Made by a program: the position numbers and the translations under genes. This document shows positions 2,451-14,487 of a DNA stretch of 64,000 nt, one piece after another. Each line of letters starts with the position of its first letter. Position 1 is the stretch's first letter. This DNA comes from Selaginella moellendorffii (Eukaryota > Plantae > Lycopodiophyta). Below the pieces are notes generated by a model that was given only the letters and a program-made list of their open reading frames with translations, had not been told where the DNA came from and did not search any database. The stretch spans positions 3,093,060 to 3,157,059 of the forward strand of contig NW_003314269.1 in the NCBI RefSeq assembly GCF_000143415.4, read 5' to 3'.

Positions 2451-3617
2451 GACAAAAGAGAAGAAATAGAAAAAACTACAAAAATAAAAAAGATCTAGAT
2501 GATGCAAAAACTAGAGCTAAACAAAAAACACAAATTCAAGCACTTTCAAAATTTCCTCTCACCTCCACCAATGTGAATATGCATATTTCTATATTCCATG
2601 CACTAACCTAAAGACCCTAGCTCAAGCAACTCACACATTTAGGGTTTCAGGAAAAAGATGGTGGGCATCGACAAGATCTAACGGCTACGAAAATCCCATT
2701 ATATTAAAATAGTATATGGCATAGTAGACTTTATAACAGTTGATTATTGTGTTTATAAATAATAAACATTTTTATAATTTATAAGTTTTCTTAATTGCTT
2801 GCATTTTTGTTTTATTGGCTGGTTTGGAGATTGGCACCAAGTGTCTTCATAGGCAATAACAAATTTGAAGCTTATGGATCCTCTCCCTTTTGCTTCACCA
2901 TCCAATAGAGCTTAGAGACAGCCACATACCTGTCCTTGTAAAACCCAATCCAGAATGGGCTAAGCTCAATGAGTATGTTATACTCGTGGAGTGATTGAGC
3001 ACATGGAATTTTGAGTGAGCAGTAAAGTTGTGAGATTCTTGTGTAATAAATAGCAACCAAGAAAAAGAACTCTAAGAGGAAGGAGAAAAAGTTATGATAT
3101 CTCAAGAACAAACTTGTTCACATTTACTCCAATTTTGCTAGGTGGCTCAGGATTTTTTCTGAAGAGCATATTTCTTCAAGGTTATCCTTTAAGGGGTTAA
3201 ATTAAGGTCACTTTTCTAGTTGCTCTTTTATTGTATAGTGAAAAATTTTGTTTCCAATTGAAAGAGCAAGAGTTTCTCTTGTTCATAGTGTCCAATAAAA
3301 TTTATGAGGCAAGAGTGGTGTGTTTTTGGCAATAAGTTTTTAGCTCACAACACGGGGTCCACTCTTTATATAGTACTAATCACCAATACTTGTTTCAAAT
3401 ACACTTATCAAACCATGCTTCACCTTACAAACTCAAAATTTTCTCCACATATTAATTCATTCCATCCTTACATTTCTATCTATAGAACTCATATGCCCTG
3501 CTCCACACCTCATATGCCCTGCTCCACACTCATTATGATGCAGGTTTCTAGATCAGCTGCCAATAAATTTAGACCTTCGAATTTTTGTTGGCTTTAAGTT
3601 TAGAACTTCTTATAGAT

Positions 3618-8711
<5,094 letters not shown>

Positions 8712-9714
8712 CGCTGCCGATTTGGATGGAGCGACGTCGGCGCTAGAAAAATGCGTTGCCGCAGCGCCTGGGGGAATCGTCAGGGAGAAGAAAGAGGCCG
8801 GTCGTGGCGAAACAAAGCCCTAGGAAACGGCATTATATAGCATTTTGTAACTTGCCTCCGAAGAAAAAACTTTCTCGCCAGTCAAGGTCTCCTTTCGTCG
8901 CTCGTGACGCGCATATTCGGATCTACTAAATAATTTTATAGAATGTTCTCTAGTACCCCTGACGATTAAGATTCGCGAATCATCGGCAGAGCTGGAGATT
9001 CGACGCCGAAATCCGAGTGCCACGCTCCTGGCTTGTGAGTATCTTTGCAAGATCCCGCTCGACGAGCAGTTCAAGGCTGTCTATCTGCTAGCTTTGAGCG
9101 CTGCTAGTGCTTTCCTGGTCGCATTTCTTCCTCGTTGCTGCTGGCTTCTGTCAAGAATCTAGCGATATCGCTTTTGCATCGTACAAGAGAGCTATCCTAT
9201 ACCAGCTGCATTGGGTGTGGTGGATTGCCTCGTTTGCTGGTCTTCCCAAGTTTGTGCTATCCGTGCATGATCTGCTTGCGTCCAGGGTTAAACACAGATC
9301 CTTGCAAGCGTTGGCTGGATGCTTTGGTACTGTTCTTTGCACGGCCAGGGGACGAACAGGGGTCACAGTTCTGGACAGCAGAAGGAGACGACGGACAAGG
9401 GTGAAGACAGCGTTACTCTGTACGCAAGAGGTGGGAATCTGAGAAAAGAGGACTTTGGAGCCCGAAGATTTGCTATAGTTTGCACAGGAAAATAGGGCAT
9501 CAGGGGCCTACGAGTATTTTTTTTAATGAGAAGTGGGAAAGTTCGAGCAGGCTTCCGAGAAGAACAATCCCGCCTTCTTTTATGGATGGTGATTGCGTTC
9601 CTAGTTGTGACTAGCTCACTGGCGATGAGAGACGACTTAGGGACTTGTGTGGTGCTGAAGATACCTGTGACCACTTCTTTTGGCCCTAGAGTTTTGTTTA
9701 CAATTCTTCCACCT

Positions 9715-9830
9715 ATGGAAAAAGACCACGCGATGTGCCCGGCCACGATGCAGCGCCCACCGATCTCACGCTCATCCCAAACCACACGCTGCCTGCGCCG
9801 CCTCATCCAGGAGTGGTGCGTTGCCAATCT
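9715..9830 (+). pseudogene. Fragment of a plant U-box (PUB) domain embedded in the ABCC pseudogene
   Basis: Reads CPATMQRP-TDLTLIPNHTL-RRLIQEWCVAN across frameshifts, matching the U-box C-terminal consensus (LIPNHTLRRLIQEWC). Confidence 0.8.
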
Positions 9831-10310
9831 ACAACTAGAGAAAAAGAGCAAACAAAAATCTCGCTAGATCAGGTGAACAACTTTCATCACGACGCCAATA
9901 GGATGCTGGTACCACTTACTTGACGATCCTTCAACGTGTTTGTTATAATCTCGACCCCCTCGGACAGTTCTCAGATCCAGAAATCTGGGAGATAAGTTCT
10001 GTCATCCTTCTATTTCCTAAAAGGCCATGTTGTTAGGAGACGTCCTCGTGCAGGAAGAAGCTGGACTCACAAGGTAATGTGAAAAACATGTTGTTTTCAA
10101 TAGATGTGCTGTTCTTTAGTGTTGGATTATCTATCTTCTATTTCCTAAAAGGCCATGTTGTTAGATAAATGCCAACTCGGAGACCTCCTTGTGCAGGAAG
10201 AGGCAGTTCCTGGGTGAGGCGAGCACGTTCCCACCCAGAACGGGTGAGCCGGGTGTTAGCCCGGCGAGTGCATTCTGGAGGGAACGAGTGAGCCCGTGCC
10301 CGAGAATGGC

Positions 10311-10541
10311 CTTAATGGGCTGTGGTGAGACTGTTAACGGACACATGGAAGAATATTATTCAAGGATGAAAGGGTTCTCCAGAATTGGCAGCTAGTAGCT
10401 TGGTTCTCCAGAACCTGGCAGCTGGCAGTTGGGTTCTAGAGAACCTGGCAGTTATCAGCCACGTTCTTGCAGAAAACCTGATTCAATCCAACGGCTGCCA
10501 ACGGTTGGATCAAGTTAACGGGCGAGCCATAACCCATTAAG
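10311..10541. mobile_element. Putative MITE-like insertion with imperfect 28-bp terminal inverted repeats
   Basis: cttaatgggctgtggtgagactgttaac ... gttaacgggcgagccataacccattaag, with three internal repeats of ggttctccagaa(cc)tggcag. Lies in sequence that is absent from the parental ABCC. Confidence 0.5.
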
Positions 10542-10691
10542 AAAAGGTAATGTGGAAAACATGTGACATGTGTGGGAGAACGGTGAGAACTGGAGCGTGG
10601 GACAGGCCTTGGACGAGTGATGCTAAAACAAGGCCGTGTTTTGGCACCCAGACGAGGCCACCGCGTCCGTGGACAGTGCTACCGATGGAAT

Positions 10692-10861
10692 TGTTGAGGT
10701 ATACACTCTCTATGACATGATCCTAGGTAGCAGGAGTGCCACTTCATTGATCCAGGTGTAGGCTAGAGGTGTGTCTCTTCATCATGTATATATAGCTATG
10801 ATATATACGACTATACTGGGAGTCATCCACCATCGTGTAGCTTCCGCTCTTCTTCTCTTCA
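10692..10861 (+). repeat. LTR1 (170 bp), followed by tRNA-iMet-type PBS TGGTATCGAAGC
   Basis: tgttgaggtatacac...cttctcttca, with an internal TATA-like tatatatagc. Confidence 0.92.
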
Positions 10862-11845
10862 TGGTATCGAAGCCCTGAGGGCTTCAGATCCAGGGACGAT
10901 GGCGCTGGCCGAGGAAGGGGCTAGCAAGGATGACGATGAGCCACCGGACATGGCTGAGAGGTGCCAAGATTTGGCACTCTGCTGTATTGAGTGCCAAGAT
11001 AACGGCACTAGCAAGCTGAGCAAGGCGCTAGGGCGTGATCGAGTAGAGACTGGCCCGGAGGCACTGGCAGAGGCGCTGAGAGAGGGCTGGTGTAAGGCCT
11101 AAGTGATGTGCGCTAGGGCGTGAGAGAGCGGCCCTGAGGCGCTGAGAGAGGCGCTGAGAAGAGGCGCTGGCTGAGGCACTTACAGATGCGCTGAGAGGAA
11201 GCACCGAGCAGAGACTGCACTAGGGTGCTGAGAAAGGCACCAAGGGCTGGCCGAGCAGAGGTGAGCGCTGGGCACCCTGTAGGGCTGAGGGCTGCAGGCA
11301 GAGGTGCAGTGCTGGGGCGCTGGTGGACTGGACAGAGGTATTGTCCAGAGGCAAGCAGGAATGCTGAGTGCTGGGCTGTGAGAGGGCTCCATAGCAGAGG
11401 GAGAGAGCCGTTAGGACTCTGGCCGAGGAGGCTTGATCGAGGCTGAGACGATGAGGGCTGGCTTGAGGCACTGGAATGCTGAGTGAGGTGCTGGTGTGAG
11501 AGAGCGACCCTGAGAGAGTGGTGCAAGGCACAAGCACAGAGGCGCTGGCAGAGGCGCTGAGAGAGGAGAGACTGCGATCAGAGGCCGTGAACAAGGCGCT
11601 AGGGCGTGCGAGGCCCCGCAGAGACTCACCAGAGGTGAGTGCCGGGCGTAGAGGCACGAGGCCCCGAGGGCTGGCCGAGCAGAGACTCCACTGGAGCACT
11701 GAGTGAGGCGCTGGTGTGAGAAGGTGCTGGCAGAGGCGCTGAGAGGAGGCATTGAGCAGAGACAGATTTCTGTCGTGGATATGACAGAGTGCTTGGATGC
11801 AGAGGGAGAGTGATCTCAGATTCATGTCATAAGATCGAGAGGGAG

Positions 11846-12015
11846 TGTTGAGGTATACACTCTCTATGACATGATCCTAGGTGGCAGGAGTGCCACTTCA
11901 TTGATCCAGGTGTAGGCTAGAGGTGTGTCTCTTCATCATGTATATATAGCTATGATATATACGACTATACTGGGAGTCATCCACCATCGTGTAGCTTCCG
12001 CTCTTCTTCTCTTCA
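11846..12015 (+). repeat. LTR2 (170 bp), preceded by PPT GAGAGGGAG and followed by a second PBS TGGTATCGGAGC
   Basis: Direct repeat of LTR1; one substitution seen (ggtagcagg vs ggtggcagg). Confidence 0.92.
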
Positions 12016-12787
12016 TGGTATCGGAGCTCTCTCGATCTCGATGACATGAATCTGAGATCACTCTCCTTCTGCATCCAAGCACTCTGTCATATCCACGACA
12101 GAAATCTGTCTCTGCTCAGTGCCTCCTCTCAGCGCCTCTGCCAATGCCTTCTCACAGCAGCGCCTCACTCAGCGCTCCAGTGGAGTCTCTGCTTGGCCAG
12201 CCCTCGGTGCCTCGTGCCTCTAGGCCCGGCACTCACCTCTGGTGAGTCTCTACGAGGCCTTGCACGCCCTAGCGCCTCGTTCACGGCCTCTGATCGCAGT
12301 CTCTCCTCTCTCAGCGCCTCTGCCAGTGCCTATCTGCTCGTGCCTGTGCTCGGTGCCTCACGCCAGCCCTCTCTCAGCGCCTGTGCCAGCGCCTCAGCGC
12401 CTTGCTCAGCGCCCTAGTGCAGTCTCTCCGCCTCTCAGCACCTTGCTCAGCGCCCTAGTGCAGTCTCTGCTCGGTGCCTCCTCTCAGCGCCTCTGCTAGC
12501 GCCTTCGGCTGCTCTCCAGCGCCTCACTCAGCACTCCAGTACCACTCGGTGCCTCAAGCCAGCCCTCTCTCAGCACCTCTGCCAGTGCCTCCGGGCCAGT
12601 CTCTGCTCGATCACACCCTAGCGCCTTGCTCAGCTTGCTAGTGCCGTTACCTTGGCGCTCAATGCAGCACAGTGCCAAATCTTGGCACCTCTCAGCCACG
12701 TCTGGTGGCTCATCGTCATCCTCGCTGGCCTCCTCCTCGGCCAGTGCCATCGTCCTAGGATCTGAAGCCCTCAGGGCTCCGATACCA

Positions 12788-12957
12788 TGAAGAGAAGAAG
12801 AGCGGAAGCTACACGATGGTGGATGACTCCCAGTATAGTCGTATATATCATAGCTATATATACATGATGAAGAGACACACCTCTAGCCTACACCTGGATC
12901 AATGAAGTGGCACTCCTGCCACCTAGGATCATGTCATAGAGAGTGTATACCTCAACA
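12788..12957 (-). repeat. LTR3 (170 bp, inverted) with its own PBS on the minus strand
   Basis: Reverse complement of LTR2, preceded on + by gggctccgatacca (reverse complement of the PBS). Confidence 0.92.
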
Positions 12958-13294
12958 GGAATGATCCAATCCACCATCGCGACAAAGTTCTATCACCATC
13001 GCTCACTGGCTGCCTACTTTGATGGACAGCGACTACGTTCTAGCCCTACACGTTGGTTGGAAATCTTGCTCTCTCTTTTTTCAAGTTTATCCTCGTCTCT
13101 TTTTCCAGGACGCATAGCTAATACGACGAGCCGGGGAAGCTTTTGGAGAAGAGGAGCTCGTATTTCTGCAAGCGTTTTCCAAGATATCTTTTGGATCGAC
13201 TCCGATCTAATCATGCAGTAAAAAGAGGAAAGTATGATTATGTTATCTTTATGTATAAAGGTGACCGAAAACATTGAAAACGTGTGGGTTAGCC

Positions 13295-14423
13295 ATGGCA
13301 ATGGCGGAGCTTCTCAATCCCAAGAACACGGACGCCTTCCCTCTTGTAATTACGCCTGGTATGTTCCTGCATTCTCTTCTCGATCTGTATGCTCCCGTGT
13401 TTGGGCGCTTGTGCAGGAGCTTGCAGTGGAGACTTCGGCAATGATCTCGCAATTGGGATCCAGAAGCAAAAACTGTGGCTGGAAGGTCAACTCTTTGGGA
13501 GCCCTGGCGCAATTTTGTTCCGGGGATTCAGCGTGTCAAATGCGGAGGAATTTGCTCGAGTGGTGGAAGCGTTTGGATATGAGAGCATGGGTTACAGAGC
13601 TGGAGCTGCGACGAGGAAGCACCTTGTCGGGCCTGTCTACACAAACAATGCCCTCGACTCTGAAACCGAGCTTGGATTTCACAATGAAATGAGCTACGTA
13701 AGGTTTTCCCCATTTTTCATTCTAAGACTTCTTGTTTCTTGTTTCTTTGCCACAGCTTGCGGATTATCCCGACTTGGTCGTGTTTTTCTGCGAGGTTGCT
13801 CCACCGCCAAGCGCCGGCGGTGCCACCGGGATCGTCCAAGGCAAAGCCATATACAATAGGATCAAGAAAGAGTTTCCGGAGTTCACGGAAGATCTCGAGA
13901 ACAAAGGTCTCGTTTACTACAACTTACGCAGCGAGGAATCATGGAAAAAAGTCTACGAGACCAACGATAGAGCTGAGGCCGAAGCCAAGTAAGTGCAAAT
14001 CCCAACTGTTTCTACAATGATGTTTCGAATTCTAGAGCGCAAATTTTATCGAGAACGCTCCTCTGGCTCGACGATGGAGGAGTCAAAGAGATCCTGAGCA
14101 AAGGAACGAGGAAAGGGATTAGAGAGCTCGACAGTGGTGTTCACGGCAACAACAAGGTGTGGTTTAACAGTATTGGATCGGCCAAACCGTGGTTTCCCCA
14201 GTTCCAGTATTTCGAGTTTAGCGATGGAAGCAAGCTGCCAGCCAAAGCAGTCGAAGCGGCTCTAAAGATCATGGACGAAGAACAAGTCTCAGTTGAGTGG
14301 CAAGCCGGGGACATTGTTGTGATGAACAATCACTCGGTGCTCCACAAGAAACATGCCGCTGCTCCGAACACCCCGCGAAAGATTTTGGTGTCGATGCTCA
14401 AAACTTCCGGGGCGCCAGTGTGA
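13295..14423 (+). CDS. Clavaminate synthase-like / TauD-family Fe(II)/2-oxoglutarate dioxygenase (4 exons)
   Basis: GAILFRGF, GFHNEMSY (HxE iron ligands), VFFCEVAP..GGATGIV, WQAGDIVVMNNHSVLH..PRKILVSM. Exons join in frame. Confidence 0.88.
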
Positions 14424-14487
14424 TGAGATGCTTCGCTTGAGCTCATTGAGCTCGATCTCGAGAGAAAAGATAAATACCAGCCTTGTC

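Follow-up and report, generated by a model that had tools for sequence, protein, structure and literature searches.

A MoMLV provirus with inverted LTRs was reported as a case of 'integration utilizing two U3 sequences' (Colicelli and Goff, 1988, J Virol 62:633; PMC250582), and in maize, inverted pairs of TRIMs share one 5-bp target-site duplication (TSD), e.g., at AC220956:117725-118283 with the TSD CTTCA, an arrangement validated by PCR and sequencing (Gao et al., 2016, Genome Biol 17:7; PMC4717578). The inverted type makes up 6 of the 93 maize TRIM arrays, and for Selaginella moellendorffii the same study gives eight TRIM subfamilies, five of them with arrays (PMC4717578). Complex elements with three LTRs and a TSD have been attributed to template switching (Sabot and Schulman, 2007, BMC Genomics 8:247; PMC1950507): these are all direct (head-to-tail), have U3...U5 outer ends, and switch templates in R. 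Tandem TRIM arrays (L3I2) and Cassandra arrays, in which small LTR elements without coding capacity carry additional LTRs, are direct repeats as well. The literature holds a precedent for each step of the origin proposed below: for three-LTR complexes formed by template switching, for U3-U3 integration, and for inverted TRIM pairs in one TSD. A literature search for 'inverted dimer' retrotransposon cDNA found no match, and a paper on the Ty1 integrase contained nothing on the pairing of like ends.

The locus described here lies in a 64,000-nucleotide stretch of S. moellendorffii v1.0 (scaffold GL377573.1; hereafter the window), which contains no Ns. A small TRIM-class element, doubled back-to-back to about 2.3 kb, forms a 2,266-bp composite between two copies of GGAAT, and the layout given in the original prediction (three LTRs, an inverted arm, and GGAAT at each side) is correct to the base. 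The left GGAAT (10687-10691) is followed on the plus strand by LTR1 (10692-10861; 170 bp, TGTTGAGG...CTCTTCA), whose U3 end adjoins this TSD and which has one private difference, an A at LTR position 38. PBS1 (10862-10873, plus strand; 12 nt, TGGTATCGAAGC) leads into internal region A (10874-11836, plus strand), which is non-coding, harbors many degenerate 35-45-nt repeats of the GGCGCTGAGAGAGG type, and is without a Pfam or Rfam match. The PPT of this arm (11837-11845, plus strand; GAGAGGGAG) directly adjoins the central LTR2 (11846-12015, plus strand; 170 bp), which is direct with respect to LTR1 and is followed by PBS2 (12016-12027, plus strand; TGGTATCGGAGC). The orientation switches between 12027 and 12028: from 12028 on, an internal region is read as its reverse complement, PPT end first, and the PPT end of this inverted region B (12028-12775, minus strand), of which the remnant CGAGAGA is left at 12028-12034, is joined to PBS2. 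Region B runs into PBS3 (12776-12787, minus strand), which has the same letters as PBS2, and the inverted LTR3 (12788-12957, minus strand; 170 bp), whose U3 end adjoins the second GGAAT (12958-12962). Both outer termini of the composite are the TGTTGAGG end of the LTR, i.e., two U3 ends, whereas a canonical single LTR retrotransposon has one U3 and one U5 outer end. Terminal inverted repeats of 170 bp had been predicted; the ends are indeed inverted, but the repeat measures 407 nt at 95%.

According to Gao et al. (2016), TRIMs are defined by direct LTRs, PBS and PPT, a 4-6-bp TSD, a size below 1,500 bp, the lack of retrotransposon proteins, and at least two copies with different TSDs (or one copy and a solo LTR). 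In the composite, LTR1 and LTR2 constitute terminal direct repeats with TG...CA ends, each LTR is immediately followed by a PBS, and unit A, from LTR1 to LTR2, has a size of 1,324 bp. The primer-binding sites match the plant tRNA-iMet PBS consensus TGGTATCAGAGC (PMC7215508) at 11/12 and, in the case of PBS1, 10/12 positions, the consensus being plant-wide and not that of Selaginella's own tRNA-iMet; no tRNA gene was found in the window. Neither a Pfam search of five ORFs nor an Rfam search of positions 10400-13250 returned a match at E<=1. A gag-bearing (TR-GAG) identity was dropped on account of the Pfam result, and Cassandra and retrozyme identities were dropped because Rfam detected no 5S rRNA-like segment or hammerhead ribozyme. 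The family is probably multicopy, to judge from contigs of public sequencing runs, in which the LTR start occurs behind another flank and family depth is high; the searches described next retrieved no second complete copy. The window and the 21.5-kb allelic stretch contain no other LTR copies, none of the 879 candidates obtained with a 201-aa antisense ORF as protein query for further copies was significant, and the motif of LTR end plus PBS had 0 matches in metagenome contigs, as expected for a plant repeat.

The composite interrupts a C-terminal (NBD2) fragment of an ABCC-type ABC-transporter pseudogene on the plus strand, which extends from 10539 to 10686 on the left and from 12963 to 13198 on the right. 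In comparison with a paralogue in the window, the fragment has lost 14 nt, with a frameshift, on both haplotypes. On the allelic scaffold GL377565.1, the site is uninterrupted (...GCTACCGATGGAATGATCC...) and has one GGAAT (1859-1863 of the 21.5-kb allelic stretch), and neither LTR nor internal sequence is present in these 21.5 kb. Likewise, the ABCC paralogue within the window (about 3896-3900, minus strand) runs unbroken across the insertion site with a single GGAAT. Allele and paralogue thereby confirm the clean 5-bp TSD that had been proposed to split a host pseudogene, and the empty-site allele with a single GGAAT, for which a search had been recommended, exists. Since GL377565.1 has an untouched single-GGAAT site and no element, the composite is hemizygous, i.e., present on one of two haplotypes. 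As the allele is uninterrupted with one GGAAT, the 2,266 bp represent one insertion with exact ends; both flank-U3 junctions fit the empty allele to the base, and the retention of this allele in the same individual places the ends of the composite beyond dispute. In the public runs, an 'empty-site' joint was rejected as the allele, because its loose ends match 3840-3960 and thus the paralogue in the window. Another joint fits the empty haplotype, with all five TSD letters fitting both sides, but its shorter side of 19 nt is too short alone.

How does the locus compare with the described systems? To judge from the title of that report, the composite resembles the MoMLV provirus in that the outer ends are both U3 and integrase would have used two like ends (PMC250582). 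However, the MoMLV case concerns a laboratory retrovirus in cultured cells, whereas the Selaginella composite is a non-autonomous element that occurs naturally in the germ line of a plant, possesses an additional LTR in its center, and combines two internal regions that differ from each other. With the maize type 'R-L4I2', it has in common two oppositely oriented internal regions in one TSD. In contrast to the three LTRs found here, 'R-L4I2' comprises four LTRs and two internal regions and is read as two complete elements; arm B of the composite is without its own 3' LTR, and its PPT is joined to the PBS behind LTR2. The maize account, in the parts of it that were available, provides no mechanism, junction analysis, or empty allele (PMC4717578). 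An internal LTR, two cores, a flanking TSD, and highly similar outer LTRs (LTR1 and LTR3, 169/170) are shared with the complexes of Sabot and Schulman (2007), but the Selaginella composite departs from these by its inverted core B, the switch at PBS/PPT, and the U3/U3 ends. It is set apart from the tandem TRIM and Cassandra arrays by their direct orientation, and its LTR is also without 5S, so that it is not Cassandra.

The three LTRs are almost uniform, whereas the internal arms are not. LTR2 with its PBS is identical to LTR3 with its PBS (0/182 differences), LTR1 with its PBS differs from the latter at 2/182 positions, and LTR1 and LTR2 are identical at 169/170. Between arms A and B, in contrast, 38 of 539 positions are substituted (7.1%), with 227 gap columns and large indels; B is 92-94% identical to A in alignable blocks and shorter by 227 alignment columns. 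The contrast in divergence between the arms (38/539) and LTR plus PBS (0/182 for LTR2-LTR3, 2/182 for LTR1-LTR3) is significant (Fisher p=0.0012), although LTRs may just be better conserved than internal regions across the family, which counts against the argument from divergence. By this comparison, A and B derive from two different templates. Uniform LTRs and diverged arms are expected if one source templated all LTRs in a single reaction, whereas two RNAs supplied the internal regions. Moreover, the closest pair of LTRs, LTR2 and LTR3, spans the A/B boundary, whereas cDNAs made independently of each other should give the reverse pattern; this pairing depends on two sites, at which post-insertion G>A changes could have occurred. 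Taking the two G>A differences that are private to LTR1 for markers of the template was judged an over-interpretation and rejected, as they are possibly later mutations.

At the orientation switch, nt 12 of the PBS (plus or minus 1) is joined to the 3' end of the PPT, within 0-4 nt. Alternatively, the junction can be read as 4 nt of microhomology, with a single C>T change and no change in length. Three readings of the exact junction fit equally well, and the strand-transfer path is thus not fixed by the sequence. The 3' borders of PBS and PPT are natural end or pause points of plus-strand synthesis. Public sequencing runs were compared as Logan contigs, by sampled words of the stretch, of which the best run contained 36%. 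In four runs, the bin with the central junction (12016-12060) has a contig depth of about 0, and the interior is thus known from the assembly alone. A contig joint between 11454 and 12396 on 'opposite strands' was considered as another inversion and rejected, since it has the pattern of a third family copy placed on two inverted homologous arms.

These observations are probably best explained by one reverse-transcription reaction on two family RNAs, in which a tail-to-tail switch generated an inverted chimeric cDNA that integrase inserted via its two U3 ends. A-type and B-type family RNAs would have been copied together, and most likely shared a particle that an autonomous helper provided. A plus-sense strand that had just completed LTR and PBS would have jumped tail to tail onto the PPT 3' end of the other template, likewise plus-sense, and copied this backwards, with a switch that was either nearly blunt or mediated by a 4-nt CCCT/AGGG overlap. 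The predicted cDNA has the order LTR-PBS-A-PPT-LTR-PBS, followed by PPT-B-PBS-LTR in inverted orientation, and terminates on both sides in U3 (...CCTCAACA-3'). These two U3 ends would have been paired by integrase, and one concerted insertion would have led to the 5-bp GGAAT duplication in the ABCC pseudogene fragment of one haplotype. The one-step, integrase-mediated insertion of an aberrant inverted cDNA, which had already been put forward in the original prediction, is favored because the TSD is genuine, the allele is empty, both ends are U3, and the switch coincides with landmarks of reverse transcription, namely the PBS/PPT borders. The composite would then be the dead-on-arrival result of a single faulty retrotransposition cycle of a TRIM-class family.

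A different route would start from two cDNAs, A and B, that enter a mixed intasome with one U3 end each, while the free distal ends are subsequently joined by host end-joining. The U3-out/U3-out ends and the single TSD also follow from this scenario, the two differing internal regions are explained naturally, the four-LTR 'R-L4I2' arrays of maize resemble such a product, and the GAGCTC/CCCT microhomology fits end-joining. However, two independent and exact defects are required, as the extension of cDNA A has to match the PBS precisely and cDNA B has to be without precisely its 3' LTR. Furthermore, LTR1 and LTR2 should be identical and LTR3 different, which is at odds with the observed identity of LTR2 and LTR3, and parents that are 7% apart internally should give LTRs that differ by more than 0-1%; joining of two cDNAs is therefore regarded as unlikely. 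The ends of the composite being secure, its interior might still be an artifact of the Sanger assembly of 2011, through mis-assembly or a chimeric clone, and the true arrangement between the U3-flank junctions might be different. The 12016-12060 junction is unconfirmed in the public runs (bin depth of about 0, at most 36% of sampled words per run), but the low depth is accounted for, since the identical LTRs multi-map and the sampled plants probably lack the insertion. Besides, the window is free of Ns, the arms are too far apart (7%) to have collapsed, and the odd junction is located in unique sequence and not within a repeat, where assemblers mis-join. As the flank-U3 junctions match the empty allele exactly, an orientation switch must exist inside, and an artificial interior is quite improbable.

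Even smaller chances are given to the notion that ordinary insertion(s) were remodeled by chromosomal rearrangement, i.e., by inversion between inverted LTRs, by nested insertion and deletion, or by replication template switching. Recombination is frequent among LTR elements, and replication-based rearrangements also leave microhomology junctions. However, as was argued at the outset, no chromosomal crossover between LTRs could bring a U3 end to the right TSD. In addition, just two copies of GGAAT are present and the allele is without any element sequence. An inverted duplication of A is excluded, since B was not copied from A, and the breakpoints of any deletion would have to coincide precisely with the PBS border on one side and the PPT border on the other. 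Rearrangement is accordingly close to refuted. Just as improbable is a fold-back element that moves as a unit, whether similar to a DNA transposon, as in the Ginger or Foldback types, or an inverted retroelement that propagates itself. The 407-nt terminal inverted repeats, the TG...CA ends, and the TSD would suit such an element, but not the direct LTR in the interior, with a PBS and a PPT arranged as in retroelements, the lack of a transposase or other protein domain (Pfam), or two arms that stem from diverged templates. A second copy of the junction, moreover, was found neither in the window nor in the 21.5-kb allelic stretch or the public-run contigs compared. The composite would also be unable to copy itself as a unit, because a transcript that begins in one LTR would stop at the next.

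The composite is a real but rare copy-and-paste accident with counterparts in maize and in a mouse retrovirus, not a new class of mobile element. The suggestion that it is an undescribed mobile form was not borne out, as the U3-U3 MoMLV provirus of 1988 and the inverted TRIM pairs of maize precede it, and recurrence as a mobile form is unlikely, since arms from different templates imply that the composite was built de novo. What is new is the three-LTR layout, the joint between PBS and PPT, and the allelic proof.

The locus can be regarded as a natural fossil of two events in retroelement replication that are seldom documented: a switch of templates during plus-strand synthesis, at PBS/PPT landmarks and between two presumably co-packaged RNAs, and concerted integration via two like (U3) ends. 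It thereby points to a heterodimer co-packaging of small non-autonomous elements, and it indicates that the family, and hence its helper, was active after the split of the two haplotypes. If read through, the composite would fold as a hairpin of about 870 bp, and its inverted repeat of about 0.9 kb could be a source of small RNAs. It is a tentative thought, with the odds rather against it, that U3-out/U3-out integration in S. moellendorffii is a recurrent side pathway across TRIM, Cassandra, LARD, and Gypsy elements rather than a one-off. Should this be the case, the driver could be a reverse transcriptase prone to tail-to-tail PBS/PPT switches, together with an integrase that pairs like ends with ease, and the products would be ready-made long hairpins, which could seed RNA silencing of their own source families.

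The composite, a 2,266-bp insertion of three LTRs with an inverted second arm, has exactly the layout of the original prediction, as seen in a reading of 10500-13200 and a repeat search: a left TSD, GGAAT (10687-10691), is followed by LTR1 (TGTTGAGG...CTCTTCA, 170 bp, 10692-10861, plus strand), the adjoining PBS1 (TGGTATCGAAGC, 10862-10873), internal region A on the plus side up to a PPT (GAGAGGGAG, 11837-11845), the abutting LTR2 (11846-12015, plus) with its PBS2 (TGGTATCGGAGC, 12016-12027), internal region B (from 12028, reverse complement, PPT end first), PBS3 (12776-12787, minus), LTR3 (12788-12957, minus), and the right GGAAT (12958-12962). The predicted terminal inverted repeat exists, but it is longer than the 170-bp LTR (407 nt at 95% in the repeat search). 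BLAST of element parts against the 64-kb window returned exactly three LTR copies and no family member beyond the composite.

The hallmarks are those of an LTR retroelement: TG...CA ends, a PBS directly after each LTR, a PPT next to LTR2, and a 5-bp TSD. The PBSs match the plant tRNA-iMet PBS consensus from the literature, TGGTATCAGAGC (PMC7215508), at 11/12 and 10/12 positions. Because unit A measures 1,324 bp and none of the five ORFs of the internal regions has a Pfam match, the element is a TRIM under the working definition in the available text of Gao et al. (2016, PMC4717578), i.e., <1,500 bp and without retrotransposon proteins; the same text counts 8 TRIM subfamilies in S. moellendorffii. 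Rfam gave no match in the composite stretch, hence neither a 5S nor a hammerhead motif. A sense-strand ORF is kept in both arms (10899-11102, plus; 12496-12750, minus), starting ~25 nt past the PBS (MALAEE..DDDEPPD..ERCQDLALCCIE.., 67 and 84 aa); it lacks a Pfam match in either arm and might be the remnant of an ancestral gag start, or chance.

Contigs of public sequencing runs show the family to be multicopy: the LTR start is also preceded by another flank, and the repetitive internal region occurs in many lengths. In three runs (X1, X2, X6), contigs follow the PBS/internal side up to 12788 and continue with ATTCGGGATAGAAATCA... in place of the LTR. They may be truncated copies, or copies that combine the same PBS and internal region with a different LTR, and are possible leads to a related family or to the helper element. 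In X1 and X2, roughly half of the depth for the family lacks 2 nt at 12811-12812 of LTR3 (and the corresponding position of LTR1 and LTR2), which marks a common polymorphism between LTR subtypes; the composite carries the undeleted type in each of its three LTRs.

On both sides the insertion is flanked by C-terminal (NBD2) sequence from an ABCC-type ABC-transporter fragment. A full ABCC-type gene occupies ~3600-9800 in minus orientation (756-aa exon, 6232-8502; allele annotated with 1461 aa), and the pseudogene fragment (10539-13200, plus) is an inverted C-terminal piece of it, ~1 kb upstream. In the in-window paralogue (minus, ~3627-4029) the site is uninterrupted, with GATGGAGTGATCC against GATGGAAT[element]GGAATGATCC at the insertion. 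The window belongs to S. moellendorffii v1.0, GCA_000143415.2, scaffold GL377573.1, of which stretch L001 is 100% identical to window 9520-31061, and the other haplotype (GL377565.1, stretch L002) was reached through a 99%-identical allele of a single-exon ammonium-transporter gene 6.5 kb right of the composite. Here, L002 1707-1863 corresponds to window 10539-10691 and L002 1859-5597 to window 12958-16730; these matches share 5 nt, and the allele reads ...GCTACCGATGGAATGATCC... with a single GGAAT. Since LTR and internal-region sequences are also absent throughout L002, the composite is hemizygous in the sequenced plant, with bounds exactly as read. The predicted splitting of a host pseudogene by a GGAAT TSD is therefore genuine (continuous paralogue, single-GGAAT allele), the empty-site allele proposed as a check exists, and the U3-flank joints, which match that allele, bear out that both outer termini are the same LTR end. 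The insertion postdates the divergence of the haplotypes, which differ by 1.3% substitutions in the right flank. The host fragment had already lost its function by then, since both haplotypes carry its 14-nt frameshifting deletion. Just left of the composite, 373 nt (10166-10538) are absent from L002 (jump 10165 to 10539); local direct repeats (10007-10164, 10071/10544, 10386-10445) suggest that this is either a short tandem duplication or an indel polymorphism. Another structural difference lies between the TauD-family and ammonium-transporter genes (L002 ~5800-10000, window ~16860-19520), where the allele is 1,631 bp longer (7856 vs 6225).

The two arms differ at 38 of 539 alignable positions (7.1%) plus 227 gap columns, whereas LTR2+PBS2 and LTR3+PBS3 are identical over 182 positions and LTR1+PBS1 carries two private G>A differences (contrast of arm and LTR divergence, Fisher p=0.0012). 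Arm B was therefore not copied from arm A, and this rules out both the duplication of a resident element by fold-back and a fold-back artefact of sequencing. The LTRs look as if one source had been copied in a single reaction. Across the A/B boundary LTR2 sides with LTR3, albeit on two sites only, contrary to the expectation for two independently made cDNAs.

At the central junction, ...CTCTTCA is followed by TGGTATCGGAGC and TCTCTCGATCTCGATGACATG..., whereas a normal PBS, such as that of LTR3, continues with CCTGAGGG, and the PPT region reads CTCCCTCTCGATC as its reverse complement. The junction fits PBS nt 1-12 joined to a PPT without its last 3-4 nt, PBS nt 1-11 joined to a complete PPT that is two G shorter, or a putative switch inside a 4-nt CCCT/AGGG microhomology; the last predicts GGAGCCCTCTCG against the observed GGAGCTCTCTCG, of equal length with one C>T. 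Under all three readings the switch falls within a few bases of the 3' borders of PBS and PPT. In retroviral reverse transcription, the PBS border is the end of plus-strand strong-stop DNA, and the PPT 3' end is made by RNase H, where plus-strand synthesis must start strand displacement. Tail-to-tail joining of two plus-sense 3' ends is the kind of product that a polymerase template switch yields; a chance deletion is an unlikely origin, as it would have to strike both landmarks.

The composite probably arose in one faulty cycle. Co-packaged RNAs of two family members would have undergone reverse transcription together, and a tail-to-tail switch at PBS/PPT would have given a chimeric, inverted cDNA terminating in U3 on both sides. 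Integrase would then have brought its two U3 ends together (bottom-strand ...CCTCAACA-3') and inserted the cDNA in one concerted step. TG..GAG is common to the U3 end TGTTGAGG and the U5 end in reverse complement, TGAAGAGA. One-step insertion of an aberrant inverted cDNA, as originally proposed, is supported by the TSD, the empty allele and U3 at both ends. The main rival, in which two separate cDNAs pair their U3 ends and host end-joining connects the distal ends, accounts well for the four-LTR maize arrays but is unlikely here, since two precise defects would be required and the LTR grouping it predicts is not the one observed. LTR-LTR crossover fails, as originally argued, because no crossover brings a U3 end next to the right-hand TSD, and nested insertion with deletion would require two exact breakpoints, given that there are only two GGAAT copies and an allele without everything else.

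That the interior is an assembly error seems improbable to a still greater degree. Depth is ~0 in the bin holding the junction, and the best run, among public runs that are all Logan contigs, has 36% of the words. However, the sequence around the junction is unique and free of Ns, and the arms diverge by 7%. Since the joints of both U3 ends with their flanks agree with the empty allele, the orientation must also switch somewhere within the composite. X1 and X2 contain the empty-site joint (10686>12958) at flank-like depth, all 5 TSD letters fitting both sides; a similar joint in X6 was rejected as the in-window paralogue. The run data fit an insertion missing from the sampled plants.

The premise that two-U3 inverted integrants were undescribed fails against published cases, such as a MoMLV provirus with inverted LTRs, whose title speaks of integration through two U3 sequences (Colicelli and Goff, 1988), and the inverted 'R-L4I2' TRIM pairs of maize, four LTRs within one TSD (Gao et al., 2016). 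In the available text of Sabot and Schulman (2007, PMC1950507), three-LTR complexes with TSDs are ascribed to abnormal template switching between two co-packaged RNAs; those complexes are direct, whereas the Selaginella composite is inverted. It combines features of earlier cases, being an inverted three-LTR chimera with a PBS-to-PPT joint, and its allelic empty site is without counterpart in the available text of the comparison literature.

Overall, the observation is confirmed and its interpretation partly so: one-step U3-U3 integration is supported, a new mobile form is not, as the composite is presumably not copyable as a unit because transcripts would begin in one LTR and stop in the next. 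A read-through RNA of the whole composite is predicted to fold into a hairpin (871 cross-arm pairs, helices up to 140 bp, MFE -1940 kcal/mol), which might give rise to small RNAs that target the family. A gene annotated as a TauD-family 2OG/Fe dioxygenase (13295-14423, plus; L001, GL377573.1, 3776-4904) starts 333 bp right of the composite; LTR2 is directed towards it through the inverted arm, and its allele-specific expression could therefore be affected.
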